The position numbers were made by a program, and so were the translations under genes. Source: Macrostomum lignano (lineage: Eukaryota). From it: a DNA stretch of 45,937 bases. Where the stretch lies: assembly GCA_002269645.1 (NCBI GenBank), contig NIVC01004437.1, positions 1-45,937 on the forward strand, in the 5' to 3' direction. Of the stretch, positions 16,755 through 43,558 are shown piece by piece. The notes below the pieces were generated by a model. The model was not told the DNA's origin. It searched no databases and was given only the letters and a program-made list of their open reading frames with translations. How positions within the stretch are numbered: position 1 is the stretch's first letter; every line of letters starts with the position of its first letter.

Positions 16755-19700
16755 ATGAAGCCGTCATTGCTGACTACAGTTGCTAGCATATTAGCAACCA
16801 TAGTGCTAATGCTGATGCTGTCTAGGCCAGTAGAAGCTGCTTACAAAGAGGTCACTTTTGGCAAGTTCATGTTGTACGAGCAGCTGCGCATCTACCGGAC
16901 CAAGTACGGAGTCTCCGGGTATTATGACTCTACGAAAGACACTTTAGTTCTCAACAAGAGCCAAGAAAGCGATCTGCCGGCAGTGCCCAGTATTGACCTG
17001 GTGCAGGACTCAAATCGACTCTCGTCGAAGTTGGCTGTGAGCAACATCGATTTGCCACGGGTGGCCTATCAAATATTCAATGGACTCTGCCAAGGCGACA
17101 ATGGCACCTTTGCCTGGGGCGTGCGGAGCGGTCACGTGAGATCTATCTTTGTGCTATAGGAGTGTCTTGAAGGTGAAGGTTATGGCGATATGGTAGAGCA
17201 TGCAGTCTTTTTCCGGGTCAGTTGGTCCTAGAGAGTTTACATTCTCCCCCCCCCCCTGTTTAATAATTCTCCCCACCAAAAACCCAAATTCCAATTCCCG
17301 GCCTGTATCCGTTGTTGGTTCTAAGCTACATACATGTACATGGAGATAGATTAAAGCTACAGAAAAATATTTTCCAAACTTAAAATCAACACCATCAAAG
17401 ATCCCAACAACCACAGACTTATAATTCTACCAAGACGTCACTCTTTCACTGGACTAATCTCCAAGAAGTCCGGGTTTTTCAAGTGTCGCTTTATCTGTAG
17501 ACATAGTATGAACTGAATTGTCAATTAAAAAACTCTTCGCCCGCAGAGCTCGGTGCCTCGTTACATTAAAAACGGCTGGACAGTGAAGAACGTGCCGCAA
17601 GGCTACTTGGTGCCAATGTGCGTGTGCAACGGGCGGCCAGCAGTACACCGGGTTATAACGCGACTGGCCAACTTTGAGCCATTCGTTCCATTGCTGGACA
17701 AAGGATTTAGTCACCTATCAACGATAGTGATGGAGTCCTGCCGGGAGCATAGCAGAATAGAAGTCTATTGGCCGCCTGGTTGCATCGATTGCAAATTAGA
17801 GACGACAAGAACGTGCACCGTTGTATCTAAGAATAACGAATCCGCCAATGTGATGTGCAACTGCTATCACGGCTTCGATCCGGTGTCCAAGTGTTTTAAT
17901 ATTGCCGACAGGTGCACGGAACGAGTGACGCCGCACAGTGCAGAGACTGGGCGCGATCTTTGTCAGGTAATTGGCTAAATTAGCCAGAGATCTAGGAAAA
18001 GATCAAAATGAAGTTACGGTTGCGTTCGGACACGAAACACTCGCTTTCTTAGGAAGTTTTTTTGAAGGTCCCATATCACTAAACCATGCATTAGATAGAG
18101 AGATAGAAAATCTACATTTTTAGGCACTGAATGGACGAATTTTTTACCTCATGGATCAAGCTCTAAACAAACGCATACCAATTTTATATGCATTTGAAAG
18201 CCCAAAATGTGAGATTATTGACAATTGAGTGCTAAGTTTCTATCTCGTTCCAAGTGCCCGTTTAAATGAAATTTAGGCCTTCTAATGAATTGTCCATGGT
18301 ACTCAAGTGTTACATCCGAATACAAGCGTAACTTCCAGTGTTCCGAGGATCTACTTTTTAGGTCTTAGATCTCAGGATAAGTACTTAACAGAAGCATGGC
18401 TAAATAAAGCTCAAAAGACTAAGCCTAACGTAACCTAGGTAGTTTGCCGTACAAGCTCTTCAGAACGACTTGCATGTTTCATTAGGTTAGAGTGCACCAG
18501 TGAATAATAGGTCAGACTTTTCCTGTATTTTTACGTGGTTATGTCTGTTGCATTTTTTTCCAATAAACGCTTTGTAAATAATGTATCAGATTGTTAGACT
18601 ACTAAGTCTCCTAATCTCAACTCAACAGGCCGACATTGGCAACAAGTGCACGACGGACGGAGACACCTACATGTGCACGTGCTTCATGCCCTACTTCGAA
18701 AACAAAACTGTGTCCAACTTCCCCAATTGTCGAGGCAGTCGCGGCAAAGGCAGAGGCGCCGCGGCAAAACTCGCGGCAAGAAAATGCCAGAGCAAAGTCT
18801 GCGGCAACGGCGTCTGCGTTGGCCGCGAGCGCGACGTCGAGTGCAAATGCGACGAAGGCTACGCCGGGCACGACTGCCGCGAGATATTTTCAACGCTGTC
18901 TGACTGGTCCGAGTGGAGCGACTGCTTCCCGGCCTGCGGCAACATCGGCGGCCAGTTTCGCCAGCGACCTTGCCAGTCTGCCGACTCACACGGCCGATTC
19001 TGCGAAGGATTCCGACGCCAGCACCGTCGCTGCCAACCAGCCCGGTGCTTCGAGAACGAATCGTTTCCAATTTTCGTGCGCAGCTTGCACGACCCGTTGC
19101 CGGCTAGTTTATACATTCGATCCGCTGCAGTCTTTATCGGAACATTCCTATTTGTCTACTGTCTCGGTTTGCTAATCGCGCTGGGCTTCAACTTTCAAGA
19201 CTGGAAGCTCGAGTCGGTCAACCAGGCCGGTAAGCTTGCCTACGCAGTCGATCAGGTCTGCGACGAGTTGATGATCCGGCACGCCGAGCTGGAGGCCCAT
19301 CGTCGGCAGGACAGGATTGAGAAACTCAAGCGTGGACGGAAAAAGGGGGGCAACGACGCTTCTTACGCCGACGATGCCGACAACGTCGAAGAAGAAAGCG
19401 ATGATGAGGATGATCTTCAAGGCGAAATTTTAGGGGAGAGCGAAGACTTTTTTCGTATGGGCGTCTTTGTTCCTCACCCAGTGGTCGATCACCTGACTGG
19501 CGTGAGCTCTCTACAGCGGCGCAGACTTAGGCAGGCGAAACTGTCAAAGACAGAGAAGAAAAAACCAACTGAGCAGGATGGCAAGAAGAGCCTGAGCGAG
19601 CCGCCACAGGTGGGCAAGATCGACTCTGACAGGCTGTTCGTCCCGCTGGCAAAGAAAACTACCGACGAAGAAGATCTCATTGAGGAGCCGCCAGAGGGCG

Positions 19701-19801
19701 AAGACGATAACGAGGGTGAAGACGATAACGAGGGCGAAGACGATAACGAGGGCGAAGACGATTACGAAGAAGAAGGCGAGGGCGAGGGCGACGCTGTTTA
19801 A
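16755..19801 (+). CDS. Type I membrane protein (~657 aa): signal peptide, unassigned Cys-containing N-terminal region, EGF-like repeats, one TSP1 domain, TM helix, very acidic cytoplasmic tail
   Basis: Exons 16755-17135, 17547-17966, 18629-19801, all phase 0. SP MKPSLLTTVASILATIVLMLMLSRPVEA; EGF CQSKVCGNGVCVG...CKCDEGYAGHDC; TSP1 WSEWSDC..ACG...RQRPC...C; TM AAVFIGTFLFVYCLGLLIALGF; tail with EGEDDN repeats. Confidence 0.88.
18010..18335. mobile_element. Possible old MITE (imperfect ~30-bp inverted repeats) in intron
   Basis: gaagttacggttgcgttcggacacgaaacact (18010-) resembles the reverse complement of agtgttacatccgaatacaagcgtaacttc (-18335). No TSD resolved. Confidence 0.4.
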
Positions 19802-20690: not shown

Positions 20691-25034
<4,344 letters not shown>

Positions 25035-26868
25035 CTGGCTGTTACGAAGTGCACAACTTGATGTTAAAGAATTCGAATTGAAACTTCAAGTACATGTACG
25101 CTCAAAGAGCTGCAGTTAAAACAACATTTTTTCAACTGTTTTGTTTTAAATACAACACATTGAAAAGATCCAAAAGACATGCGCCTTGATGGTTTGATGC
25201 ACAGTTTTCTTTTAAGTAAATTTGATTTAGTTCAATATTAACAAAAGGAACAAAACTACAATACTTAAAGCTCCGTATCTACTCGAATTTACATGCTTAG
25301 AGTTGTCCCATCGGTGTACACCTCATAGCTATGCTATTTTTCAACGTTCATTCAATTTTTTTACGAGTTCTGCTACTTTTCGTGCTTCTGGTTAATATGC
25401 TACATCATAGCTAACTCTAAAAAATGCTTATAGTAGAGAATTTTACCATTTTTTATTGTTACAAATGTCCGTGCGTTTCTTTTTGTCTACTCATGGTAGC
25501 AGCAATAAAATATTTTTCATAAAGTAATTTTCACTGTACTGTTGCTGAACGTAACGAATTATTAAAGTATAATTCTTGTTGTTTTATTGATCTAATGCAT
25601 TCATATTCTTTTTTTTGCATTAGTAGGGCACAATTTACAATAAAATTGTAATACTGTAGATCGATACATTTTCCAACTCGTAGATTTTCGTCTTTAAGAA
25701 TCCCATTTGGAGTGGGACCTCCTGCTGCCATTGGAAACCCTTCAGGCATACGAGTATCAAACTACCATGGGAGCCAAGGAGCAATCGTGCTCAATATGGA
25801 TTAATATTTACACGACGTCCATTCTTCTCCCGTGTGGTGTATCTACGCTCGTAATGCCACAAAATAAAGTACAATCTATACATGGCAATTTCTCAGCTTG
25901 CAGCCATGCGTAAGCCTGTAAATTCAAGCGGTAGTTTCAATCTCAATTACACCGTCAGCTGTGAATTCGATTTTTTTCCCAAAGAAGTAAGCTGCGAGAC
26001 CTGAGGCTCAAGGGTTAGACGCATACACACGTAAGCTGCACGCTTATATTATTCTCTCAAACAGCAGTGTGCTAGTGTACAGTTGAGCACAAAAGACGAT
26101 GAAGTTACAAGCGAGTTGCTATTGGTCAACTGCTTCAGCATGATATAAAACAGCACGTTCTCTCTTGTTTTACACGCAATAACTCCTTGAGTAAGCATTT
26201 CTTGTTCATTTTTTGAGTCAATAGTGTTGAAACTACTCCGTGAAATGTGCATCAAACTTTAGATCAGATTAATTTTTTTCGTTTAGTAGAGATAGCTAGC
26301 TATCAGTTTGTTATTTTATTCGTTCAGTCTTCCAAACCGAATGGATGGAATTAGCGTCTCCTAAAAAAGCCGTGGATAGCACAATCTATAGCAACTACTC
26401 TTAGATATCTTGAGGCCATCTATATAGTAGACAGACAGTTTTCGGTTTCGATATTTGCCCTTTTAATGCGCAGAGGGATGGAGGCAAGGGAGGAGAGAGG
26501 GCGTACCAATGCACGCGATGCTTAAAATAGCTAGTACGAAAGGCCTTCATCAGTAGTCTGTGCACATTGTGCAGCGTAATTGTACATTGGGGACCAAAGT
26601 GGGAAAGAGAAAAGAAGGAACGATTCCAGGCTCCAGCTTGACTGGGATGGCGGTGAGGCAGGAGAGGATAGATATTACATATTAGTCATGCCCAGACGCG
26701 AGTTCAGACCTCTAGACCTCTGTGGCAAACGTATTCTTTGACAATAAGCTGGAGAAAACAATCAGACGTTACTATATAGAGTTGTTTTTGCTCCAGCCTA
26801 GAGATTCAGTCTGGTTCTTTTCTAGTTTGATTTTTATTTTGCTCTCCCATCCTCATCCTCAGGAAGCA

Positions 26869-29800
26869 ATGCACCCATACTTGCAATCGGTTAATCCATT
26901 AACAATCGCCATTGCAATATTAGTCGGCGTACTTGTGCTGGTATGGTTCTGCTGGTATAGTCCAAATTTAACGCCGGTGAGTATAAAACCCGTAGACATT
27001 GTTTACGATTTCAGCCTTTTTAGAGGTGAATCAGATGAATCAGACGAAATGTAATACAGAGTAATACGGAAACTACGAGTCAACAGTACAAATGACTCCA
27101 ACTCTTACCTCTCCCTCCTCCGCAGTCTGCCGATGCTTCAAGCAAAAAACGCAAGAGAAAGAAAAAAAACAAGAACAAAGCAACATCGGTAAGTTATCGT
27201 CAAATCACCATATCTAATCTTAGATGCGCTTCTTAACCAGCCTAAATAACCAGTGCTTTTTCTAGCAGCCAAACCAAAGTGACATCAGTCAACTTGACGC
27301 CGACAAGCAGACTACAACGGAGAGCAACACCAATGTGGAAAGCATGAGCTCCGTAGGAACGTCTCCGGAACGTCGAGCTTTCTGGGTTCAAAAAGTGAAA
27401 ATCAGAATCCCTCTTCTGACAGGGATTTAAGTACAAGTACATCAAGCCAACAGAGAGATGGCCAAAGTGGACTCTTGCTGGTGAAACCTGCCACTGACGA
27501 AATTGAAGACTATCCAGCACAGTACACGGAAAAACACACGACGCCTTCGCTTAACTCTACGAACCGTAAGTGACGATACGAGCTACAGTGTCAGGGTTTT
27601 CCGATATAAAAGACAGGCGCTGATTTATAGAATCTTTAAATAAAAAAATAGGTTTCGAGCTGCTGGATCAGCTGGAGAATTCAGATGCAGAGGACAACAA
27701 CATCAACACTGACAATTTTGATAGCATCATGTTAAAAAAGCGTAAGTTTTTTTGTTTTGAATTAATGAATGAATAGTTCAACTATTCTGGACAAACGTTT
27801 TTTCAAACTCAAACTACAGATCCACCGCTTCGAAGCGAGAAGGCATTTCACGAGCTTTCACGGGACCAAAAGTTTTTTGTGTACTTGCTATGCAAGAATA
27901 TCAAGGAGTCGACCCACGTCGATTTCAAAACATCCGTGAACGAGTCTAGTGACTGGAAGTTCCGTATGCTCAAGACCGCCTGTTCCATGTACAACGGACT
28001 TCACCCGGACCTGAGGGAGCCCAGCTTGACTGACAAGTCCTGTTTCAGCTCCTACATTGTTTATGGCGTGAAGGAGCTTGACAGAAAGACTGGTGACAAG
28101 AAGCACGAATTTGCTCCTCTTTCAAAGTACCCGGGCGAGGAAGAGATCCAGGATTGTTTCCGAAACAATACCACTCCATTTGTGAAATGCTATTTTCACC
28201 TAATCCGTTTTGATTCTGAGCTTTGTCTGAAGAACATGGGACTCACTATTCCAGCAGGTAGCTACGGCATACTAGAGATCCCTAGAGGTGAGTCCGGTCC
28301 GGCTGTGTTCAGGGACTGCCGTGCGAAGTCGACTGCCGACGCTTCTCGAAAAAGCAAATCCGAAAAACAATCAAAGCGACTGTTGTATGCAAGAAGCGAT
28401 GCACAGAACGTGCAAGAGTGTAACTGGGATGACGACTTTAGAAACTTGGTCTATTCTCAATTTGAATCAAAATGTGACGTAAGCCAGCTGTACTGGGCGA
28501 AAGAAGACATTATTCAAGCCAAAAACGCATTCCGAGTCTTGATAATCACAAAGTTTTCTGCAGCAAAGAACGCTAGAGAGCGTGAAACTCTTGCAAAGTC
28601 GCTTGGTCGAGGCACGTGGGACGTAGTTTCGGATTTCGATAGGGATAGCCGCAAGGAAGGAGGCATCTTCACCTTTATGGAAGAAGAAATGCGCAAGTTA
28701 GGTCGACTGAGCACGGTAAAGTCGTGGGAGGACCTTTCCACTCTGCAGACCCACGACATTGAAGAGTGCCAAAGCGGTCATCGAACAATTTACGTTCAAG
28801 TGATGGGATGCAGCGAGACAGGCAAAGCAGGACCGACTAATGAACACAAGCTCAAGAAGCTGCTGAGAACAAACTTGCTAAATGCCATATTTGAGAAGAA
28901 CCAGCGTCCTAGACCAGTGTTGTGTACGTCTCTATGCCTCTGCACCTCATTTTTGGAAATTGAAAATTTACCAATGAGTCCCACAGACGCTGAGTGCCAT
29001 CTAAGAGAGGCATTCTTGTCCGAGTCTAACAATGAAGATGCCTTTAAAGCGTATACCATGTACGTTCAGCAGCAAGTGCTATCCGGCCTAAGCGATCAGC
29101 TAAGGAAAGTCTATAAGAATCAAAGTCTGCAAGAACACTTGATTCTCGTTCCTGTGAATCAGTTATGCCATCTATTTGAGTCTATTTATCCTTCAATGGT
29201 TGCACTGAAACAATACGAGCTGCCTGGAAAGCACGGCCAAATATCTTTGGCTCGCGAGCAGTTCGCGACGTTTAAACCGTACCTCCGGCTTTACCACATC
29301 CAGTCTGGTCAGTCCAAGTACCTCAGCAAGGCCCTCGATCAGAAGGAACAGTACACTAATCAAGTTCGCCGTCAGTTCTTAGCTGGAAACGAACTCACAA
29401 AGGAGATGCTCCATCTGCATGATGAGTTACGATACCAAAACAGTGGAATATATGTTGAGCGAAGACAAGTTGAGACGCAGAAAGAAAAAGTGAGCAAATC
29501 TCTTAGCCATTGCGGCAACCGTTCTTTCACAAACTGGGACACCAACGTCAGGCAGATCATTCGCTTACCTCATGAGGCAGTATCTGGTGCGTCAACGATC
29601 GCCAAAATCGTGCTTTGGCGTCTTCGTAAAGAGTACCCTTGCATTGAAGTGAAGTGCTTCGATCGAATGCAGGAAGTGTCTGAAGGTATTTGTACCCTGC
29701 ACAAGAAGACAGAGCTACCTGTCCTAGTGCTGTTCGACTCTAAGGAATTCCCACACTCATCTGTTCACGCGTTTGCGTCAGAGTTGAACAGGCGCGTTTC

Positions 29801-31992
29801 TGCGCCAAGATTTGTTGCCGTTTGCGTGGAGCAAGTTCAGTCCAATAAAGAAACTAACAGGAAACGGTGCTACTTTGAGATTCCAGTTTTGACGGCAAAA
29901 CTTAGCCAGACGAGGCAAATGCATTCACAAAAATCTACATGGAATCCGGAGGCGATGAGAATCGCAAGTTGACGGACAAAGTCGAAAAGGAAACTGATCG
30001 AACACCGTTCCTTTTCGGCGTCTGGCACTTTAGAAAGGATTATGTGAAGATTAACGTTTTTATTCAGTCTCTTCTAGAGGATTGTGAAAATAAAAAGAAT
30101 TCTCTTCTGCGCTTTGCCTGCCTGACGAAGTACTTCACGCACTCATCTTTGAACTTATCGATAGCCGCCAAATTTCTGGACCTTCCTCCAGAGCAGAAGG
30201 ATCCTTTACAGGTGTTGGAACACTTGGAAGAACAGCGATATCTATTAACTGTGAAAAGAATGCGGAAAGGATGGGGGTTGGCCCCAATATCGATTGTCGG
30301 CGAGAAAATTCTTGAATATCTTTTTGAAGATATCAGTCCTATCGAGCGAGAAGGAGAACAAGTCAGAATGTTTGTGAGCAGTCTGTGCAAAATGGGTGAA
30401 GAAGGACCCGACTCTCTGCTTTCCTGCTTGACCTACCTGGTACGAAGGTTGATTTCTTGCCAGAAAAGGACAAAACATCCTAAGTTAACTGACTTCTTCA
30501 TGACTCTTCACGAGAACCTTCCATTGGAAGAAATTGAGCGCATATTCACGAGACTAGCAAATGCTTTTCCAGAAACAAAGTCTCACACGCTGGTCCACTT
30601 TGCTCGCTATGTTGCATACCACCAGAAGGATCATACAAAATCTATCGTTTTTGTCCGTAAGGCATTGGACATAACTGAAGATGCGACATTCTTCTCGGAC
30701 ACAACTTGCACTGATGATGTAGTCCTTGGTTTATCCGCTCACCTCATTAACTGTCGCGTGAGCTCCGGTCCAGAGATATCTTTTCAAGAGGCTCAGGCGT
30801 GGGCTGTCGAAAGCATTCGCCTGTGCAAGAAGATTCAAAAAAGAGTTCCCGCAAAGTCAACTGGAGATTTCGTTTACAAAGCGCACCCGTTTGTTTACGA
30901 AATTCAGGCGCAGCGCATACTGCTAAATCGTTTCTTCGAAACTGAGTGTCACTCTGACAGCGAAATTTACTTTCAGGAGATTGAAAACGACTGCTTCTGT
31001 GTTGCTAGAGAAGCACATCAGAAAATAATTGAGAATGTTTTAAACCTGGAGAAGATGCATGAAGAAGGCGAAGTGGACTCGGAAACGCTAACCGAAAAGG
31101 ATATGGGAAAACTAAATGATGCAAAAGAAGAATTTATCAGCCGCTATCGCTTCTCTCAATCGGCCATCAATGCAAGCAGCGTGAAGCTTCGAACAGACAT
31201 CAAGGACAATGCCTATGCGTGGACGATTGTGGATGTGTACACCCAGAGCAAGAAGGCATCTAAGGATTCGGCTCTATGGGATATTTATGAGTCCGATGAT
31301 AACAAGCTGCTGGCGCGACTTATGTGGGATCGCGTCTGGCGACTAAAAGGAGTGAATGCGAAGGACTCTGAGTCACTTTTAGAGATTTTGCTGCAGTGCA
31401 AATCGAAGCTGTCGCGTACTTACTTGGAAGCTTGTGTGCTAACTATCTTGTCTCGACCTACAAAGGACGTGCTAGAACGGGGCATTCAACTTGCTGCCGA
31501 TTGGCGAACGAAGTTCACTACTGACGTCATTGCCAATTTCATACACGGCGCGTTCTATCTGGCCTCTGCGCTCTCTCGGAAGCCAACGGATCCAAAGCGA
31601 AAAGAACATCTGCAGGAGGCCAAGCAGCTGATGGAAAGGTGCGATCGCCTGACGAAACGGGACGATCCGTGCCATCAGGGAAGCTCCAAGACATTTCCTG
31701 GACGAAACGTGCCCCGACTTGTTCTCGGCACAGGTGATAACTTGAAAGCTTTGATTTACCTACCGAGACGACGCTCGTTCGAAGAGCAACAAAAGTACAT
31801 CCTGAACGAGACTCGCTATAGAACATTCACTGGCTACCTGAACGACACCGATCGAGTGGTCTGCGAAGAACTTGACTGCTGGTGCTTCGAGTGCCCGAGA
31901 ACTCGTTGCGAAAAGAAGAATTTCGTCAAAGGCGCAAGGTGTCGTTTGCCATTGCGTTAGCCTACAGTGGACCTGTGCCTTTCATGATCTGA
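26869..31992 (+). CDS. SAMD9: SAMD9/SAMD9L-family protein (~1580 aa after repairing three 1-nt deletions): N-terminal TM anchor, AlbA/Schlafen-like domain, SIR2-like domain, STAND P-loop NTPase, TPR-like helices, C-terminal OB-fold region
   Basis: Exons 26869-26976, 27126-27188, 27266-27565, 27652-27741, 27820-31992. Motifs in SAMD9 order (human motifs recalled, not searched): HVDFK...ACSMYN...YIVYGVKE...VFRD (AlbA); WDVVSDFDRDS (cf. WFAVLEFDPES); IRLPHEAVSGASTIAKIVLWRLRKEYPC (cf. [28 protein letters not shown]); LPVLVLFD (Walker B); HFARYVAYHQKD (TPR); KVSFAIALAYSGPVPFMI* (cf. KVSFYLGFSIGGPLAYDI). Frameshifts near 27362, 29909 and 31875. The symbol denotes family, not proven orthology. Confidence 0.85.
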
Positions 31993-34678: not shown

Positions 34679-37600
34679 ATGACTGAGGTGGAATACGCTG
34701 GAAACAGGGTGAGCATCAAAGTTTAACAAATTCTTTATGTTCAAAAAAGTAAACTTGTTCCATAAATTTTGCTACATTCTTTCGTCCGAACAGCAACATG
34801 ACACGGACGATATTGAAGAGCCGAAGCCGCCACAGGCGTTTAGCTCGTCAGCTGCTATCGTTTTCTCCTGTCTCGGCACCGTCGTTGGCACCGGAAATAT
34901 TTGGCGATTTCCTAGAATCGCCGCCAGAACAGCGCCTCTCAGGGTGAGTCAATCTAGGAAATCCGTCATATTTGCTACTGAAGTTTCTACCGATCGGAAT
35001 CGTGTCTCCCGTGGTCTGGGGCTGCTGATTTACTAACCCATCTGCTGACATTTCCGCAACTTAAACTACTCACAGTAGCGTAATAGAAAATTTTGCGTTA
35101 TCCTTAAACTATGCCCTAATCGACAACTAAAGTTTTCACTTTTAGTTACCCAAACTTTTTTTTGCTAAACGTTAAACGCTGTTCCCGTCAAGCTGTAGTT
35201 TTAGTTCCACAAATGCGCAGTTTTATATTTATTTATATGTTGACTTTTGTAAGACCTTTAGTGGCTACATGTAGGTATCAAATGGCTAGCAAAATAAGAT
35301 TAATCACACTGCAGGTCTAGGGGATGCCATAATATTTACTAAATACCGCTATTAAGAGCTGCGTAACGACGCATTCGAACCTCAACCCGCAGGCACCCTG
35401 ATTTTTCTGGTCACGTGGTTTGTTTTTCTGTTCCTGTGGTCGTCGCCGATGCTTCTAATCGAGTACGCCATCGGGCGCTACTTCAAAAAGTCGCCGATCC
35501 AATCGTTTAGGAAGGCGATGGGCGACAAGTTTGTGTGGTGCGGCGCCTGGGTCACTTCGGTGACGTTTCTGATTAGGTAAGATCGACAGGTTTCTTACAC
35601 CAATTGATCAAGCCAGTCTGCAGTCGCAGCAGATTCAGGTTGACTTTCATAGTAGCAATAAATGAGGAAATTCTGCTATATTCGAACCAACGCCAGCTTA
35701 ATTATGATCAATTTTCTCATCGCATCAACATCGTTGGAAAAGTTACTGAAGCTCGAAACCTCTTGGACTTACAAAATAGTCATATGCAAGCGATGTGCGG
35801 TTCGCTCGAGTCTGGTTCCCTAAATTTAACGATAGGCATACAAAATGACATTCCAATAATTTTATACAGTTAAAATTCTTTCTACTATCAGTAGTTTATT
35901 CGCAGCTAGAGAGACAAAACACTTAAGGACAGAGGGTCAGAAATATATTAAAAAGTAAACTTAGCGTACTTTTTCTTCAAACTCTACTTACTCTGTAGTG
36001 TCATTAGCAAAGCCTGTGTGTCTCTGTGAAAAACGCTGAAATTTTAATTTACAAGTTCAAGAAAACTTGAGTGATATACACTAGTTCAGGGCTCGGCAAA
36101 CTTCGGCCCACGCAGGCCACATGCGGCCCGCAAAGCCTCTTTATCCGGCCCTCGGGTCCTTTAAAACTTCACAATAGCAATCTATCTCGTTTACGTCTTG
36201 TGTCTCTTCTCAGCTATCTGTCTCTACTCTCCTCTCTCTTCTCTCTCCCTTTCTCTCTCCTCTTAGCTCTCTCCCCATCTCCCCTCTCCCCATTCCCCTT
36301 CTCTCTCCTCTCTCCCCTCTCCCTTCTCCCATATTCCCCCTTCTCTCTCCTCTCTCCCCTCTCCCCTCTCCCCTTTCCCTTCTCCCCTCTCCCATCTTCT
36401 CTCTTACCTCTTCTCTCTCCCCTTTCCCCTCTCTCCTCTCTTATCTTCTCTCCCATTATCTTCTTTCTTATCTTTTCTTTCATCCCATCTCTCCTCTCCT
36501 CTGTCATCTTCTATTGTCTCACCTTTCTTCTCTCATCTGGCCCGAACCCGAAGCCCCGATTCTTTATCTGGCCCTTAAGGTAAAAATCAGCTGGCCCTTT
36601 TCACCGACCTCTGTAGTAGATTTAACAACTAATCATATTTATCATTGCCCAGCCAAGTCAAACTGTCATAAGCCGTACGTTTCACTTAGGCTCGTCGTCT
36701 CTCATTAATAGCCAACAAGGTGAAAGCCGAGGCAAACCCGACCGCTAGTAGGCAGCTAACGCATATCAATGCATAGTTCATCGGCCCCATCGATAGATTA
36801 GCCTCGATGGCCGGCTCTGAAATATCATACAAGGATAAGGGTTAATAGTTAAAAGATTTTACGTTATTTTACCTACTTACAGTAGAGCAGTTTGCATCTT
36901 ACTAAACTTTTTTTAACTCACTGTAGGCCAAGCATCTGTATCGCATCAGGAATCCTCTATTAGTATTTTTCCCACTATGATTGGGAACGTCGCTTAGAAA
37001 TGCAACTAGTAGGTGCTGCTTCGAACTGACGCTTCGATTTCTACGCGTTGTCGAGCAGAAACTGGGACTGCCGCAGTAACGGGCCGGGGAGTAGTCCCAC
37101 TGGCGCTTGCCTGCGAGTATCGCTTATGCAATTGATCCGATGCGGTCTCTTTTGAATTGTGAGAGTTCAAGGTTAGCCTATTGAGGAGATGGTCGTGGCT
37201 CAGTTTACGCAACTGGCATGGAAGGATGGGGTGGCGGTCCAAGTTTAACCTACTGGAGGAGGGGGTGGCGGCCCAAGTTTAACCAACTGGGGGAAGGGGC
37301 TGGCGGCCCAAGTTTAACCAACTGGGGGAGGGGGTGGCGGCCCAAGTTTAACCACATGGGGGAAGGGGCTGGCGGCCCAAGTTTAACCACCTGGGGGAAG
37401 GGGCTGGCGACCCAAGTTTAACCAACTGGGGGAGGGGCTGGCGACCCAAGTTTAACCACATGGGGGAAGGGGCTGGCGGCCCAAGTTTAACCACCTGGGA
37501 GAAGGGGGTCGCTGCCCAAGTTTAACCAACTGGGGGAGGGGGTCGCGGCCCAAGTTTAACCAACTGGGGGAGGGGGTGGCGGCCCAAGTTTAACCAACTG

Positions 37601-40600
37601 GGGAAGGGCTGGCGGCCCAAGTTTAACCAACTGGGGGAGGGGGTGGCGGCGCAAGTTTAACCAACTGAGGGAGGGGGTGGCGGCGCAAGTTTAACCAACT
37701 GGGGGAGGGGGTGGCGGCCCAAGTTTAACCACATGGGGGAAGGGGCTGGCGGCGCAAGTTTAACCAACTGGGGGAGGGGGTGGCGGCGCAAGTTTAACCA
37801 ACTGGGGGAGGGGTTGGCGGCCCAAGTTTAACCACATGGGGGAAGGGGCTGGCGGCCCAAGTTTAACCACCTGGGAGAAGGGGGTCGCGGCCCAAGTTTA
37901 ACCAACTGGGGGAGGGGGTCGCGGCCCAAGTTAAACCAACTGGGGGAGGGGGTGGCGGCCCAAGTTTAACCAACTGGGGAAAGGGCTGGCGGCCCAAGTT
38001 TAACCAACTGGGGGAGGGGGTGGCGGCGCAAGTTTAACCAACTGGGGGAGGGGGTGGCGGCGCAAGTTTAACCAACTGGGGGAGGGGGTGGCGGCCCAAG
38101 TTTAACCACATGGGGGAGGGGGTGGCGGCGCAAGTTTAACCACCTGGGGGAAGGGGCTGGCGGCCCAAGTTTAACCAACTGGGGGAGGGGCTGGCGGCCC
38201 AAGTTTAACCACATGGGGAAGGGGCTGGCGGCCCAAGTTTAACCACCTGGGAGAAGGGGGTCGCGGCCCAAGTTTAACCAACTGGGGGAGGGGTCGCGGC
38301 CCAAGTTGAACCAACTGGGGGAAGGGGGTGGCGGCCAGTTTGACCAACCTGGAAGAAGGGATTGGCGGCCCAGTTTAATCTTCGCAAACTCAGAACTGTC
38401 TTTAGACTTACCGTCCCGAACCTCAACAAAGTCCCTAGTGCACGAGGGACTCTCCTGCATTTCGTAGTCCAGCATCTCGAGTTCCACCCGATACTCCAAG
38501 CCCTCCTGCTGGTCCGTATCCTGGCAGTTGCATGAGGAAATCACCCAGCGGCAGGTGGCGCTGCTAAAAGTTTAATTAAACAATCAAATCAGCCACACAT
38601 CACACTTTCAATGGAAATTTAAAGACTTGATCAAACTCACTCTGGGTAGCTGTCGGGATACCTGGGACTGCTGATGTACTGGTAGGACAGTTTAGCGTAC
38701 ACCTGGTAGTACTCTGCACAGCTGCCAGAGGTTGCCACCCAGTCGCACGGGTCCGTGGCCGGAGACCGATTCTCACCTGAGAATAGATTAATTAAATTCA
38801 TAGAAAAGTGGCGCTCCTGTAATCTAATTTTCGCCTTGGCACCTAAAAGGCACACATGCAGACACCAAAAGTAGCACCAGGCATCAAAAATAGAGTTCAG
38901 ATATCCGAAATAGTGCACTATTCTAGACAACTTAGATGCGTCAAGACGCCCAAAAAGGCGTCAAGGCTCTCAAAGTGACGCCAAGATACCCACAGTGACG
39001 TCAAGACACCAAAAAAGGCGTCAAGGCTCTCAAAGTGACGCCAAGATACCCACAGTGACGTCAAGACACCAAAAAAGGCGTCAAGGCTCTCAAAGTGACG
39101 TCAAGCACCAAAAGTGACGTCTAGACACCCAAAGTGACGTCAAGACACCCAAAGTGACGTCAAAACACCCAAAGTAATGTCAAGACACCCAAAGTGACGT
39201 CAAGACACCCAAAGTGGCGTCAAGACAACCAAATTGGGTTAAAACACTCAAAATGACGCCAAGACCCACAGAAATCGTGAATTCATAACTGAAAAGTCAT
39301 CCTGACATCAATCTTCGAAAAAGAGGCTTTTCCAGAAATTCCGAGAGCCCAGCTTAAAAAAATGAAGCAACACGAAACTTACACGTTCCGGCCTTTAAAA
39401 CAGGCATACATTGGCACAGAATTGCGCAGGTAACAATCGCCATCGCAATGCGGTGGTCTTTTCTATAGATTAAAACCATAATGCCGATTTGCTAAACGAG
39501 GCTTGTGCTCAGGTGTTTCCTGGTTTTTGAGGATTTTTGTGTGCTCGCCTGTTTATACAGTCTCTGGGAGAGAAGTTCGGTCGATAAGGCACGAAGCGCT
39601 TATATAGATAAGATGACTGCTTGCGACAAAGTGAACTCTTTTTCTTCAGCCAACTATCGAACGCTATTTTGTTTTCGATACTACTTATTAAATCAGTAGC
39701 TTGTAAAGGCAAAAGTTACCTAAACCATAAACTTTCAGTTGCTACTATTCGGTCGTGCTGGGCTGGTGTTTCTACTATGTGTACAAAACGATTCAACTGT
39801 CCGCGACCGGAGAGCTGCCGCAGGCCGAGCCAGAGAGTCAGGAAATATTCGAAGCGTTTGCTGTAAGGCTTTGGCCCGAGTTCTCTTTTAAATTCACAGG
39901 TTGACTGCTTTTGACTCTGAAGAAACTGGAATCTGAGGCTTCCAGTCCTGAAGAAACAGGAAAATGCATTGGATCGAGGACACTCTACCCTGAAAAATTA
40001 GGGATTCCCTGCCCTGAACAACTAGGGATTCCCTGCCCGGAACAACTAGGGATTCCCTGCCCGGAACAATTAGGGATTCCCTGCCCGGAACAACTAGGGA
40101 TTCCCTGCCCGGAACAACTAGGGATTCCCTGCTCTGAACTTTATTCCCTGCCCTGAACAACATTCTCCTGACTATAGAGATGACTAGAGATTAACATAGG
40201 CTCCCAGTCCTGAAGAAATTTAAGGATTGAGTCTCCCAGTTTCGCAGTCCTAAATGAGCAGTTGCTTCGCCTTTGAGACGCTAAATTCAAAAGACGCGTT
40301 GGTAACGTTAACCGCCTGATTGACTTCTCAATTCCCAGGAGAAAAGCTACTGGCCAATCATGTGCCACGGTCTGGCCATCCTCGCATCCGGCGCTTGCGT
40401 AATCGGCGGCATCACCTGGATTGAGAAGGCCAACATGGTGCTGGTGCCTACCCTGCTGCTTATCATTATTGGCACCTACTGCTGGTCGGTTCTGAACAAA
40501 TATAGCGACTATGGCATTAAGTTCCTATTTACTCCGGATTTAGGTAAGTTCAGTTGTGCGCTCCTACTAGGGTGTCGTGAGGGATTTAACCCAGCGACTA

Positions 40601-43558
40601 AGCAATCCATGACGGCTAAAACAACTTGTAGAAGTTTCATTATGCAGCAATTCATTCACAGTTCGCAAAGACGTATTAACAACGCTAGATTTCCATTTTC
40701 AATTCCCTACAGAAGCGCTGCAAGACCCTCGGCTCTGGGTGGACTCGGCTTCCCAAAATGCCTTCGACACCGGAGCCGCTATGGGCCTTATCGTTCCCTA
40801 CGCAACCTACATGACTAGGAAGCATGGCGTCGTGAGGTTCTCGACGCTGATTCCCGCCATGAACAACTTTGTTAGGTAACACAATTTCAATCGTTTTTTT
40901 CTAAGTTTAGCAGGAGAACTTTTGTTGGAAACAAGGAATTTAAAAAGCTCTCATGGCAATTTTCATTCCGCAGCATGCTGTGCGCACTGACCATCTTCTC
41001 GACAGTGTTCTCCACTCTGATCCAGACTCAGAGCACTCTATCGCGCACCGGCATCGTGGAGATTATCAAGCAATCTGGACCGGCTTCCACTGGGCTCACA
41101 TTCATCTGGATTCCCGTGCTATTTGCTCAGGTTGGCGTCTTAGGAAAAATTCTCTGCGTCTTGTTCTTCCTCTGCCTCAGCTTTGCCGGTGTTAGCTCGT
41201 TGATCGCCAATTTCGAATTGACGTCGCTCACTCTGCAGGACTTTGGAAGTAAGCTGTCTACTAAATAAATAATTATTGCTCATGAAGGCATGAGCCGCCA
41301 AAGCTCAGAGTAACATTCGTACAAGCCTTCGGACGTGACGATGAGAAGTCAGGGCCGCTGTAGACTATGTATGACGTGTATGTGTACTTATCTGCGTCCG
41401 TTTGCATGCTCTGGAGTCAGTGGAGTGGCCATGACTGCTTGCCTTCTGGCTGACTTGGGATCAACTGTCGCTTGATTTTGCAGCGGACAGTATGTTTCTA
41501 CGGTTGTAGGAGATGACGCAATGTATGGGGATGTACGAGTGTACCTGACTGAGCATCCCCAATATGTTCATGAGCCAACTCTGTTAAGCAAAGAGTTTCA
41601 AAATGAACTTTAGCTACCTCTTATTTGCATCGTTCTAAATTCCAGTTCCACGAAAGTATGGCACACCGATTGTGATAGTTGCAACCTTCTTGATTGGTCT
41701 GCCGTCGGCTATGGAGATTGAAATTCTAAGAAACCAGGTACGCCGCATTTGGAAGTTAATTGTCTAATTAATACAATTTTAATATGAAACGTTTGTACAA
41801 CGAAATTGCAGGACTTTGTGTGGGGCTTCGCTCTAATGCTGTCTGGCATCATGTTCCAATTGTTGGTAATTAAGTACGGCGTTAGAAAATTCCAGCAAGA
41901 GGTTGTGAATGACTACGGCGAGAAGGACTGGCGTTTGACCATCGTTACTATGATTATCATTGTGTAAGCTGGCCGCTACAATTTCCACTTGAGTAATCGA
42001 TTTCTTAGTTCATTGGTGAATGACAGGCATATACTTGTATCCGGCCCTCGGGTCCTTTCAAACTACACAATGGCAATCTGTCTAGCTCAAGGCTTATGTC
42101 GCTTCTCCCCGTCTTCCGTCTTCTCTCTCCTATCTTCTCTTAACCCTCTTCTTTATCCCCTTTCTCCTCTCTCTCATCTTGTCTCTTCTCATCTTTTTTA
42201 TTATAGGCAGGGGGGTTGTGTGCACCCTGGCGCACTTTAAGCGACATAGGCACACAACCGGCGAGAGGCATTACTGCCCATTCCGCCGACTCCCCTGAGC
42301 AGGCATACAAGCGCGCGGATACGTACGCAGGCACACACTCACACAGGAGTGTACAGCGGCCCTAACTTTATATTATCGTTAGGAATGTACACTTCACTGT
42401 GCCTTGAGGGGTTGGCTCTCAAGGCCGTTAATTGCACGAGCAGAGCCAAGCCGAGATTCGAATTCAGCCCCAAATTAATGTGACTGAACTTGGAATCGAG
42501 CCTGGGTCGCTGGCACACCAGAGCCTGCGCTAGACCGCTGGGCTACGGCCCCCTTCTCATCTTCTCTCTTATATATTTTCTCTCATTCCATCTCTCGTCT
42601 TTCTGTTCTTTCTCCTCTCTTATCTTCTATTCCCTCTCATTTCCTCTCTCATTCTGGCTTTATTTGGCTCTTGAGGTAAATGTCACCGACCTCTTAACAT
42701 GAAGCGATGTCAACACGAAAAACCGGACCCTTTACGCCTAGTAAAACTTGTAGATTATAAAGCTTAATAGTTTAAAAAGCTTACTCAGCTACATTGTTTT
42801 ATCGTATTTTTATAAAACCTAGTTTGACAAGCTGACAAAGTGATTACAGATTAATGAATCAATTTATTCTCCGATAATTTTGTTTTCAGCGTCATCGCTC
42901 CACTCGAAGCGGTGGGCCTGTTGGTCTGGTGGGGGCTTGAGCTGATCCGCAGCACCGCGGATGAGGCACCAGGCAATCGCTGGTACGACTACGGCGTTGA
43001 GACCTTTGTCACCGTCATCACTGAGGTCAGTTGCTACGATGCCATACTCAAAGCGCCTTGAAAATGACTTTTCGTCTTAAGTTAGGACAAATTTAGTTGG
43101 TACGACTTATGAAGCACTAAGTGGTTAGCAAACTACGAGTCAATCCTTTGGTTTTAAGCAAGAACTGTTAAATTTTAAGTTCGATTCTAGAGCATTATAC
43201 TGATCTTGAGAGTTTAAATGGAGGATGTCGCATGCGAACTACCTAGAAAAGTAGTATTAGCCGCTGTCATTTACTGAAATAGTAAAATTTACTGAATTCA
43301 TGTGCCATCTTTCAATTCGTACTATTCTTTATTTCGCAGTGGGTTGCGCTGCTGCTGCTGCTATTGTTTGTCAACGTTCTTGTCTATTACCTGCGACCAT
43401 CCTGGATGAGGGAGGACACGGACGAGTCCAAGTACGCCAATGGCGAGGGCCAATTCGAATTGAAGTCGTCCGGTGCCTATTCACGACCGTTCGAGCCCGG
43501 GGCGGTCAACTCGGCCTACGTTAACAGCAACGAGAATCTGTCCGATGTCAAGTACTAA
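34679..43558 (+). CDS. SLC6/NSS (SNF) sodium-dependent transporter, ~576-580 aa, prokaryote-like subgroup
   Basis: Exons 34679-34708, 34794-34943, 35393-35576, 39739-39862, 40339-40543, 40713-40875, 40974-41248, 41646-41737, 41812-41963, 42890-43025, 43340-43558. Motifs GTVVGTGNIWRFP (TM1), IEYAIGR, CYYSVVLGW (TM3), WVDSASQNAFDTG (TM6), FAGVSS (TM8). The exon 2/3 phase needs either one extra G at 34941-34944 or a 13-nt microexon at 35262-35274. Confidence 0.9.
36087..36613 (+). mobile_element. hAT-type MITE, second copy, with internal CT-rich tract
   Basis: TIRs CAGGGCTCGGCAAAC / TTTCACCGACCTCTG; shares atccggccctcgggtcctttaaaacttcacaatagcaatc with the 12323-12968 copy. Flanks CACTAGTT/TAGTAGAT match at 5 of 8 positions. 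Confidence 0.75.
36686..39479 (-). CDS. Single-CUB-domain type I membrane protein (234 aa), nested antisense in intron 3 of the SLC6 gene
   Basis: Exons 39479-39383, 38776-38641, 38563-38412, 37110-36922, 36816-36686 sum to 705 nt, ATG to TAA, with all GT-AG phases matching. SP MAIVTCAILCQCMPVLKA; CUB ISSPRYPDSYPDSATCRWVI...VELEMLDYEMQESPSCTRDFVEVRDG...YCG...LLVAFLSD...RGFLMRY; TM YALICVSCLLAVGFASAFTLLAI; tail NERRRA. Confidence 0.88.
37225..38375. repeat. G-rich ~33-34-bp minisatellite, ~34 copies, in intron 3 of the nested CUB gene
   Basis: Unit ggcccaagtttaaccaactgggggagggggtggc, with recurring variants (accacatg, accacctg, gcgcaag) arranged in repeated order. Confidence 0.97.
38935..39265. 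repeat. 20-bp minisatellite (partly 60-bp higher order) containing TGACGTCA palindromes
   Basis: Unit aagtgacgtcaagacaccca; six exact TGACGTCA at 38996, 39056, 39096, 39135, 39155 and 39195. Confidence 0.92.
39990..40155. repeat. 24-bp minisatellite, ~6 copies, in SLC6 intron 4
   Basis: Unit ggaacaactagggattccctgccc. Confidence 0.92.
42039..42695 (+). mobile_element. Third, degenerate hAT-type MITE copy, interrupted by a SINE
   Basis: Left body atccggccctcgggtcctttcaaactacacaatggcaatc, CT-rich interior, right end ttgaggtaaatgtcaccgacctct. Left TIR not recognisable. Confidence 0.65.
42195..42552 (-). mobile_element. Full-length tRNA-derived SINE with TSD
   Basis: Minus strand head GGGGCCGTAGCCCAGCGGTCTAGCGC (A box) ... 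GGCTCGATTCC (B box); A-rich tail; 10-bp TSD CTTCTCATCT (42185-42194 / 42553-42562). Confidence 0.88.

Follow-up and report, generated by a model that had tools for sequence, protein, structure and literature searches.

A probable lineage-specific SAMD9-family STAND NTPase with a signal-anchor-like N-terminus in the flatworm Macrostomum lignano

Our analysis indicates that the Mlig002174 locus of Macrostomum lignano probably encodes a lineage-specific SAMD9-family STAND NTPase, for which a scheme combining a signal anchor with a triggered nuclease can be proposed. The locus was studied in a 45,937-nt stretch of contig NIVC01004437.1 (the window), in which a five-exon gene with four canonical GT..AG introns occupies positions 26869-31992 of the + strand; all features of the gene described below are on this strand. 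The family is a known one, of which the encoded protein represents a lineage-specific variant, and this protein is already present in GenBank as a hypothetical protein: BOX15_Mlig002174g2 (P0001; 1577 aa), which has been public since 2017 and carries the UniRef label 'Sterile alpha motif domain...', is 99% identical to the window product over its full length. The preliminary description of this DNA had put the gene forward as a candidate for a new innate-immunity system of invertebrates. It is instead one lineage-specific paralogue within a family that is already on record from both animals and bacteria.

The window is ~98% identical across 10.5 kb to scaffold NIVC01000104.1, and application of the five-exon model to the locus on that scaffold (L001) yielded an uninterrupted 4734-nt CDS whose product is exactly P0001. 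Because this intact CDS was obtained from a ~98% identical locus, the model goes beyond what chance would produce, and the gene is real. The GenBank annotation of M. lignano consists of RNA-seq transcript assemblies and ORFs predicted by TransDecoder (PMC5730564). Gene cluster Mlig002174 has two or more near-identical copies, and the window locus is among them.

Exon 1 (26869..26976), which contains the start codon and the signal-anchor-like helix, ends at the donor CCG/GTGAGT. Exon 2 (27126..27188; acceptor CTCCGCAG/, donor TCG/GTAAGT) encodes a juxtamembrane polybasic cluster, KKRKRKKKNKNK, at 27144-27179. Exon 3 (27269..27565) encodes a Ser/Thr-rich disordered linker; its model was validated on L001, and the acceptor of the annotated homologue lies at 27268/27269, the second AG in tagCAG. 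Exon 4 (27652..27741), defined from its splice sites and a paralogue alignment, encodes an acidic segment (FELLDQLENSDAEDNNINTDNFDS...) and is the first part that the P0001-type gene and the M. lignano paralogue P0002 have in common in the alignment. Exon 5 (27820..31992) contains the entire SAMD9-type core, which is distributed over three frames in the window: two long ORFs at 27879-29972 and 29939-31960, both reported previously and both present, and a terminal frame that stops at the TGA at 31990-31992. The four phase-compatible upstream exons that had been proposed do possess canonical splice sites and are joined to the exon starting at 27820, but exon 3 of the window copy is interrupted by a 1-nt deletion, and not every one of the four is in phase there.

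Assignment of the P0001-type protein to the SAMD9 family of STAND proteins, over the stretch that starts with the SIR2-like domain and ends with the OB fold, is well supported by profile and model comparisons. A profile of 19 relatives matched human SAMD9 chains at E~1e-45, with the C-terminal motif included, and a profile built solely from flatworm sequences (A1) had human SAMD9 37ib_A as its sole PDB match (E=1e-6). The profile alignment to SAMD9 begins in the SIR2-like region (chain 37ht) and extends across the TPR region. In the AF2 models, pLDDT was 80-95 for the SIR2/NTPase part and 84.4 overall for the C-terminal half, and a Foldseek search with the latter placed human SAMD9 at the top (E 2.9e-22, 960-990 columns), followed by Avs5, IFIT and Avs4 at 1e-5 to 1e-4. 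In the search with the SIR2 segment, the top six matches were also human SAMD9 (9zjr/9zjw/9zjz/9zjs/9zjv; E 3.5e-19 to 3e-16, 478-507 columns). In both Foldseek searches the leading matches were thus human SAMD9 throughout, ahead of the next match by 13-17 orders of magnitude, and the structural match that the preliminary description had named as a check was obtained at E values of 1e-19 to 1e-22. Several divergent paralogues (36-43% identity) are present in M. lignano. Among the 264 relatives in the database, many have a length of ~1220-1240 aa, and one of these derives from metagenome contigs.

The order of domains is AlbA_2-like, SIR2-like, NTPase with a Lys-less Walker A, TPR/helical and OB. 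This is the SAMD9 order given in the preliminary description, and it is upheld by profile and fold matches to human SAMD9 that start in the SIR2-like domain and reach the OB fold; the AlbA_2 match lies just above the Pfam cut-off. The SIR2-like domain (28518..29330; P0001 residues ~420-690) was modelled with a pLDDT of 80-93. The STAND-type NTPase follows at 29358..30322 (residues ~700-1021). Its Walker A motif, H771-EAVS-G776-A-S-T779 (29571-29597), contains no Lys, and its Walker B motif reads ...VLVLFD826-S, with D826 at 29736-29738. A signature of GG[T/S] in place of GK[T/S] characterizes the family (PMC5445408). Across the 19 relatives, whose consensus is H-D-x-S-x-GGTT, H771 and T779 never vary and G776 hardly does; the second Gly is replaced by Ala in the window copy and P0001, and P0002 has SGATT. 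Both motifs depart from the family consensus and from human SAMD9, with G-A-S-T versus G-G-T-T in Walker A and D-S versus D-D in Walker B; the flatworm-only profile pairs PHEALSGAST with HHPGCGGTT of human SAMD9 37ib_A. The TPR array and helical domain (30338..31657; residues ~1027-1466) is all-helical at AF2 model residues 328-767. The C-terminal OB-fold-like beta domain (31718..31989; residues 1487-1577), which ends in ...KVSFAIALAYSGPVPFMI, falls, in the window copy, into the last of the three frames. It was detected as a second HMM domain in which the last ~120 profile positions fall onto the SAMD9 C-terminus ...KVSFYLGFSIGGPLAYDIE (i-Evalue 0.004-0.009), and its beta strands were predicted at model positions 788-876 (P0001 residues 1487-1575) with pLDDT values mostly of 83-93.

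The putative nuclease at 27906..28325 (P0001 residues 216-355) is a borderline case. The motif E216-STHV-D221-F-K223 conforms to the E-x4-[ED]-x-K of Schlafen-type AlbA_2 (PF04326, profile positions 1, 6 and 8), with a G-V-K-E found later. Pfam scores were 26.1 bits for the window ORF, 25.4 for P0002, 28.8 for P0003 and 23.5 for P0001, so that three of the four sequences are at or above the cut-off of 25.3. Genuine vertebrate SAMD9/9L proteins score 26-29 bits with the same model; by this measure, the borderline AlbA_2 domain scores like that of true vertebrate SAMD9. Comparison of the AlbA region of P0001 with that of vertebrate SAMD9 by hhalign, however, gave a probability of 0.17%, without profile-profile similarity, and the region has a pLDDT of <50 in the AF2 model. 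Among the catalytic and RNA-binding residues of the human SAMD9 AlbA domain that were compared (E184, E196, E218, D241; K198, K214, R221), three were placed. By Pfam coordinates, E196 corresponds to D221 (Glu in the paralogues) and K198 to K223, so that P0001 has Asp at the place of the putative catalytic Glu; D241 (GVKD) may correspond to E272 (GVKE), by motif resemblance alone.

No SAM domain was found in P0001 or in the + strand ORFs of the 4 kb upstream, in agreement with the preliminary description. SAM is restricted to vertebrates and lies outside the ancestral core of the family (PMC5445408); its absence is therefore compatible with SAMD9-family membership. For the same reason, no domain has been 'replaced', and the earlier reading of the N-terminal helix as an anchor in place of the SAM domain is not supported.

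Three additional exons stand in front of the core and encode a single very hydrophobic helix, the polybasic cluster and the disordered linker, and the anchor exons are spliced to the SAMD9 core in the RNA-seq-derived gene model, P0001, as had been proposed. The helix comprises L11-W29 (26899-26955). The peptide MHPYLQSVNPLTIAIAILVGVLVLVWFCWY, the basic cluster and the Ser/Thr/acidic linker were all recovered by translation. The 19-residue Kyte-Doolittle mean reaches 2.71 over LTIAIAILVGVLVLVWFCW, the sole segment above 1.6 in the 1577 residues of P0001. Residues 1-10 contain no K, R, D or E, whereas residues 30-54 contain 10 K/R and a single D, and a disordered linker of ~130 residues separates the polybasic cluster from the core. 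A single N-terminal hydrophobic segment and positive charge on its C-terminal side are both features of a signal anchor, and the N-terminus fits the N-out/C-cytosol orientation suggested previously. A comparable N-terminal hydrophobic segment was found in none of the 273 other family proteins examined. The architecture had been presented as one not recognized from earlier descriptions, and a transmembrane SAMD9 is indeed not described, nor are transmembrane segments mentioned, in the 2017 (PMC5445408) and 2025 surveys of the family; a text search likewise returned no description.

An unlikely alternative is that this N-terminus does not serve as a permanent anchor of the mature protein: it may be a cleaved signal peptide, it may belong to one isoform beside soluble ones with a start further downstream (e.g. 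Met183), or proteolysis may free the protein, whose polybasic cluster would then serve as an NLS. P0002 and the other M. lignano paralogues, which lack a hydrophobic N-terminus, begin where exon 4 or 5 would lie, and the KKRKRKKK of the cluster resembles a classical NLS. In addition, differences between the two copies are 4 non-synonymous to 1 synonymous in exons 1-4 versus 6:16 in the remaining CDS, a ratio that suggests weak constraint on the N-terminal exons. However, the h-region is ~20 residues long and is not preceded by a basic n-region, and typical cleaved signal peptides have a shorter h-region and a different charge. A lumenal or secreted location would also keep a STAND NTPase away from the nucleotides and RNA of the cytosol. 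Moreover, the frame crosses four introns and reaches the core without a stop in 186 codons, which is very improbable by chance ((61/64)^186, or ~1e-4), and the exon junctions derive from transcript assembly.

Human SAMD9/SAMD9L (9zjr, 9zjs, 9zjv, 37ht, 37ib; AlbA 7ksp) is the best and nearly exclusive profile and fold match of the flatworm protein, and the two have in common the core order from AlbA_2 to OB, the Lys-less Walker A with a conserved upstream His and the C-terminal motif KVSF...GP..., although their identity is only ~15-16%. Among invertebrates, SAMD9-family proteins are described whose N-termini belong to the DEATH superfamily (CARD/Death/Pyrin/FIIND; Mekhedov, Makarova, Koonin 2017, PMC5445408). 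They likewise lack SAM and place a variable N-terminal module before the conserved core, but theirs is a homotypic adaptor domain rather than a putative membrane anchor. The nearest relatives with a recognizable N-terminal effector domain are the HEPN_DZIP3-SIR2-NTPase-TPR proteins P0007, P0008 and P0012 from ENA/Logan assemblies. They share the SIR2-like-to-TPR core (phmmer E 1e-28 to 1e-38) but have a HEPN RNase-type domain at the position of AlbA_2 and no membrane anchor. In the bacterial anti-phage STAND proteins Avs9/Avs5, too, the N-terminal effector is a nuclease or SIR2 and is combined with an NTPase and a TPR sensor, and the Avs5 filament (9nc9) and Avs4 (8dgf) were the next-best fold matches behind SAMD9. 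These matches are, however, much weaker than those to SAMD9 (E 1e-5 versus 1e-22), and the flatworm gene belongs to an animal and has introns.

Pairwise alignment with L001 revealed three 1-nt deletions in the coding exons of the window copy, which the preliminary description had overlooked. One lies in exon 3 after 27342 (GAAAGC-ATGAG versus GAAAGCCATGAG in L001) and shifts frame 2 to frame 1; the others lie in exon 5 after 29905 (CCC to CC) and 31880 (GGG to GG). The claim that the ORFs join into one reading frame therefore holds for L001, where the model is intact, whereas frames 0, 2 and 1 of exon 5 connect in the window only when a base is restored at each of the latter two sites. Read literally, the spliced window ORF meets a stop in exon 3 after 110 codons, and would thus yield only a 110-aa membrane peptide; with the three bases restored, no premature stop occurs throughout the CDS. 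Because of these frameshifts, the SAMD9-like protein may not be made at the window locus. Either the deletions are consensus errors of a long-read assembly, or a redundant duplicate has been inactivated very recently.

It is a serious possibility, though somewhat short of even, that the frameshifts are genuine and that the window copy is a pseudogene left by a recent genome or chromosome duplication, with the protein produced only from the BOX15_Mlig002174g2 locus. Three independent 1-nt deletions in a 4.7-kb CDS each break the frame and none is compensated, and the protein collection contains no product of the window copy. The assembly of M. lignano holds 180 Mb of duplicated blocks at >=95% identity (PMC5730564). 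In the same window, ~1 kb of exons of a neighbouring SNF transporter gene is undamaged, but at 0.6 events per kb no event would be expected there about half of the time. That density of indels in the CDS is far below the ~3.5 per kb of the flanking non-coding DNA. Furthermore, the two copies differ by 17 synonymous and 10 non-synonymous changes (pN/pS 0.16) without any nonsense codon, so that any decay must be very recent. Each of the three lesions under-calls a short run of C or G by one base, a typical residual error of PacBio assemblies, and the authors of the assembly state that ORF-breaking base errors occur in such PacBio-based sequences (PMC5730564).

With regard to function, the helix would act as an uncleaved signal anchor that places the 10-residue N-terminus in the lumen or exterior and, by the positive-inside rule, the whole SAMD9 body in the cytosol. 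The polybasic stretch would rest against acidic lipids, and with its flexible linker the STAND module would be able to operate beside the membrane. If human SAMD9/9L and bacterial Avs9 serve as analogues, the resting state would be closed and nucleotide-bound; opening or oligomerization of the protein, in response to a nucleic acid or a pathogen as the cue, would unleash the AlbA_2 nuclease on tRNA or other RNA, causing local translation shutdown. We regard as speculative the full proposal that the anchor and the lipid-binding patch permanently hold a SAMD9-type sensor-nuclease at a cytoplasmic membrane face, with tRNA-cleavage shutdown triggered at membranes and confined to them (e.g. to sites of viral entry or replication organelles), or that regulated proteolysis frees the protein, whose polybasic cluster would then serve as an NLS. 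If true, this would be the first membrane-anchored animal member of the SAMD9/Avs9 lineage.

It seems improbable that the protein, instead of sensing pathogens, is associated with membranes as a factor for housekeeping or growth control, for example in the dynamics of endosomes or the control of translation under stress. SAMD9L has been linked to early endosomes, and the locus has no link to infection; mammalian SAMD9/9L are also antiproliferative, with mutations leading to developmental disease. However, the activities characterized for the family are restriction of viruses and cleavage of tRNA-Phe triggered by virus or mutation (PMC12331169), and its bacterial counterparts are anti-phage Avs proteins (PMC12680541). 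The divergence of the M. lignano paralogues and the exchange of the effector in the nearest relatives (HEPN_DZIP3 for AlbA) are both typical of immune gene families.

In addition, a polypyrimidine tract with a CAG acceptor (26851..26862), located 6 nt 5' of the ATG, may be a spliced-leader trans-splice site. The spliced leader of M. lignano terminates in ATG, and its trans-splice motif is [T/C]TNCAG (PMC8629364). The CCTCAG of the window is a near match to this motif, the acceptor sequence (...CATCCTCATCCTCAG/GAAGCAATG) is unchanged between the window and L001, and an ATG supplied by the leader would share the frame of the SAMD9-like ORF.

The two long ORFs of the SAMD9-like gene (27879-29972, frame 0; 29939-31960, frame 2; both on the plus strand) lie where the preliminary description had placed them, followed by a short third frame (frame 1) that terminates at a TGA at 31990-31992. 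A homology search using the joined large exon identified the M. lignano protein BOX15_Mlig002174g2 (GenBank; P0001, 1577 aa), with 99% identity over its full length, and a paralogue, BOX15_Mlig021180g1 (P0002; 39% identity); both share the UniRef label 'Sterile alpha motif domain...'. The locus that encodes P0001 (L001) lies on scaffold NIVC01000104.1 of assembly Mlig_3_7. This scaffold is ∼98% identical to the window across 10.5 kb, and collinearity between the two extends over ∼24 kb. Four plus-strand exons with canonical splice sites precede the large exon 5 (from 27820), as had been proposed: exon 1 (26869-26976), encoding MHPYLQSVNPLTIAIAILVGVLVLVWFCWYSPNLTP; exon 2 (27126-27188), encoding SADASSKKRKRKKKNKNKATS; the Ser/Thr-rich exon 3 (27269-27565); and the acidic exon 4 (27652-27741), the intervening introns being 149, 80, 86 and 78 nt in length. 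When this five-exon model was transferred onto L001, it yielded an uninterrupted CDS of 4734 nt, the translation of which is exactly P0001. Because the GenBank annotation of Mlig_3_7 was generated by genome-guided RNA-seq transcript assembly and ORF calling with TransDecoder (PMC5730564), the junctions connecting the hydrophobic exon 1 to the SAMD9-like exons rest on transcript data, at least at the sister locus. The gene is real and its limits are correctly set, and the protein with its predicted anchor is already present in public annotation as a hypothetical protein.

In Mlig identifiers, the suffixes '.g1/.g2' mark duplicated loci that are almost identical (PMC5816591), and a reading of 'g2' as a second gene within a trans-spliced unit was therefore rejected. 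Duplicated blocks with at least 95% identity account for 180 Mb of the M. lignano assembly (PMC5730564); most simply, the window locus is another locus of the same Mlig002174 cluster. A text search for SAMD9 in Macrostomum, or for Mlig002174, found no literature. An acceptor-like sequence (CCTCAG/GAAGCA, 26851-26871) is located 6 nt 5' of the ATG. Since ATG forms the 3' end of the spliced leader of M. lignano, trans-splicing at this acceptor would supply an in-frame ATG, and the protein would gain Met-Glu-Ala.

The assignment of the core to the SAMD9 family is sound. Single-sequence phmmer searches with both window ORFs produced no matches among PDB sequences, so that profiles were needed, and a word-indexed homology search with a two-protein flatworm profile returned P0001 alone. 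When residues 186-1385 were compared exhaustively with 1.8 billion representatives by phmmer, 264 relatives emerged at E<=1e-3. The only PDB entries matched by a profile of 19 of these were human SAMD9 chains (37ib, 37ht, 9zjr and others; E about 1e-45), in an alignment that spans the end of AlbA, the SIR2-like domain, the NTPase and the TPR region, with a second aligned segment at the C-terminus (KVSFAIALAYSGPVPFMI versus KVSFYLGFSIGGPLAYDIE of SAMD9). SAMD9 was also the sole PDB match of a profile built from the two flatworm proteins alone (E=1e-6). AlphaFold2 modelled the SIR2-like domain and the N-terminal part of the NTPase with confidence (pLDDT 80-95), and residues 700-1577 with a mean pLDDT of 84.4 and a pTM of 0.75. 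For both models, Foldseek placed the recent human SAMD9 cryo-EM structures first in the PDB (E 3.5e-19 and 2.9e-22), followed by p97 (7e-6) and by the Avs5 filament, IFIT and Avs4 (1e-5 to 1e-4); the proposal of a SAMD9-type protein is thus borne out by profile and structural comparison alike. A Walker A motif without lysine is a hallmark of the family (PMC5445408), and a conserved histidine upstream of it is described in a SAMD9L cryo-EM preprint. P0001 has both (H771-EAVS-G-A-S-T779), although its Walker A is slightly deviant (GAST versus the family consensus GGTT) and its Walker B ends in D-S instead of D-D.

The AlbA_2 domain, a putative nuclease, is probably present but represents the weak link. 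With a cut-off of 25.3 bits, the Pfam SLFN_AlbA_2 model scored 26.1 bits on the window ORF, 23.5 on P0001 and 25.4 and 28.8 on paralogues. These values look marginal, yet genuine SAMD9/9L of vertebrates reach 26-29 bits with this model. However, the AlphaFold2 model of this region was unusable (pLDDT <50), and hhalign found no similarity between the flatworm and vertebrate SAMD9 AlbA profiles. In the shared Pfam model coordinates, E196 and K198 of human SAMD9 correspond to D221 and K223 of P0001, the paralogues having Glu at the D221 position; because of the negative hhalign result, the hand alignment of further catalytic residues serves as a lead only. Matches of an AlbA-only profile to ribosomal protein uS19 in the PDB were at chance level (E about 0.7-1.3) and were discarded.

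The sole segment of P0001 with a 19-residue Kyte-Doolittle mean above 1.6 is LTIAIAILVGVLVLVWFCW (2.71), which is preceded by ten uncharged residues and followed by ten Lys/Arg within 25 residues. By the positive-inside rule, this charge asymmetry predicts an uncleaved anchor with its N-terminus outside and the bulk of the protein in the cytosol, in agreement with the orientation suggested earlier from the helix and its lysine-rich cluster. No comparable N-terminal segment was detected in 153 other proteins recovered by the homology searches, mostly the nearest representative relatives, or in 120 vertebrate SAMD9/9L; in both sets, the hydrophobic maxima are internal strands of folded domains. 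Furthermore, the M. lignano paralogues start at what corresponds to exon 4 or 5, and only a retroelement, with no exon-1-like sequence, was seen upstream at the P0002 locus. These findings indicate that the anchor, polybasic cluster and linker constitute a module that was added to one paralogue in this lineage. The module evolves fast: exons 1-4 (26869-27741) of the window and L001 copies differ by four non-synonymous and one synonymous substitutions, and the core (27820-31992) by six and 16, respectively, which suggests that the anchor and linker are under relaxed selection, or selection different from that on the core.

Contrary to the earlier claim, the anchor does not stand in place of a SAM domain: within the family, SAM is limited to vertebrates, other animals having DEATH-superfamily modules or nothing at this position (PMC5445408), so that nothing has been replaced. 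The idea that a SAM or Death exon further upstream is spliced to the acceptor at 26862 was considered and rejected, as no such domain occurs in plus-strand ORFs within 4 kb upstream of the gene. The sole recognizable feature in that interval is an SH2-like stretch of 220 stop-free codons (23380-24039; 19.8 bits, just below the cut-off; stop at 24040), which probably represents the last exon of another gene and lies 2.8 kb upstream of the SAMD9-like start codon. Transmembrane segments in the family are mentioned neither in the survey of PMC5445408 nor in the 2025 cross-kingdom study, and a text search found none; the anchored architecture thus appears to be undescribed. The nearest non-Macrostomum relatives with a recognizable N-terminal domain (P0007, P0008 and P0012, from ENA/Logan assemblies) carry HEPN_DZIP3 (E about 1e-32) before the SIR2-like/NTPase/TPR core, where P0001 has AlbA_2. 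HEPN is likewise not mentioned in these two surveys, and its position underlines the modularity of the N-terminal effector/adaptor region.

Compared with L001, the CDS of the window copy carries 27 substitutions and lacks a single base at three points: in exon 3 following 27342 (CC to C), and in the large exon following 29905 (CCC to CC) and 31880 (GGG to GG). The latter two explain why the large exon is read in three frames. The preliminary description had joined these frames into one, which requires both bases to be restored, and the exon-3 deletion escaped it; read literally, the spliced ORF comprises 110 codons and meets a stop in exon 3. Once all three bases are put back, the CDS contains no premature stop, and 17 of the substitutions are synonymous and 10 non-synonymous (pN/pS 0.16), which excludes long-standing pseudogene status. 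The deletions are either residual homopolymer errors of the PacBio-based assembly, for which the authors mention base errors that break ORFs (PMC5730564), or a very recent inactivation of this copy. Single-base indels over the whole shared region (20 versus 15) show no bias in direction or homopolymer context. All six exon pieces compared of the downstream sodium:neurotransmitter symporter (SNF) gene (34836-41238) are intact relative to L001, although the ∼1 kb involved is too short to separate assembly error from decay. That the frameshifts are real and the window copy is a pseudogene is a serious candidate, which we place somewhat short of an even chance.

SAMD9/9L act against viruses and cell proliferation and are of medical importance; how they are activated and where they act is still debated. 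By analogy with SAMD9/9L (PMC12331169) and Avs9 (PMC12680541), the flatworm protein may be a membrane-tethered, autoinhibited STAND sensor; activation would release the AlbA_2 nuclease to cut tRNA or another RNA, and translation would stop near the membrane. A non-immune role of the protein seems unlikely. The hydrophobic segment of P0001 is too long for a typical cleaved signal peptide and has the wrong charge pattern, and we consider it similarly improbable that the N-terminus is cleaved or alternative, or that proteolysis releases the protein and the polybasic cluster then serves as an NLS. Members of the SAMD9 family are known to differ in their N-terminal module, which may be SAM, a DEATH-fold domain or none (PMC5445408), and a natural membrane-anchored version, if true, would be a new way to position a sensor-nuclease of this kind. 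The find is modest, being confined to one gene cluster in one species and predicted from sequence only. It raises the question of whether the toxicity or specificity of a tRNase coupled to a STAND module depends on its localization, and M. lignano, with transgenesis and RNAi, provides a tractable test case.

The window also contains a Ty3/gypsy-type LTR retrotransposon (2983-8004) bounded by 210-nt direct repeats with 100% identity (2983-3192 and 7795-8004). Its gag ORF (3143-4048) includes a CCHC zinc knuckle, and its pol ORF (3943-7308) is open throughout its 1121 aa and carries protease, RT, RNase H and integrase. The GC content of the element is 0.54-0.64 versus ∼0.4 in the surroundings, and the insertion appears to be young and may be active. 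Two 300-nt direct repeats with 99% identity (8361-8660 and 9776-10075; region 8361-10075) enclose GC-rich nested tandem repeats (9017-9688; periods of 21-175 nt) with minus-strand ORFs. A 406-aa ORF (18581-19801) has thrombospondin type-1 and EGF-like matches; no gene is called at its position in the L001 gene table. Simple repeats include a pure (ATAG)n microsatellite of 1 kb (21074-22081; ∼252 units) with extreme GC skew and, in an SNF intron, a 34-nt satellite of ∼34 copies (37224-38378). The 24-nt tandem repeat ATCTACCGACCTATTTACCACCGA (22570-22718) is present in ∼6 copies in the window and forms an array of ∼900 nt in L001 (about 4950-5860), a large difference in copy number.
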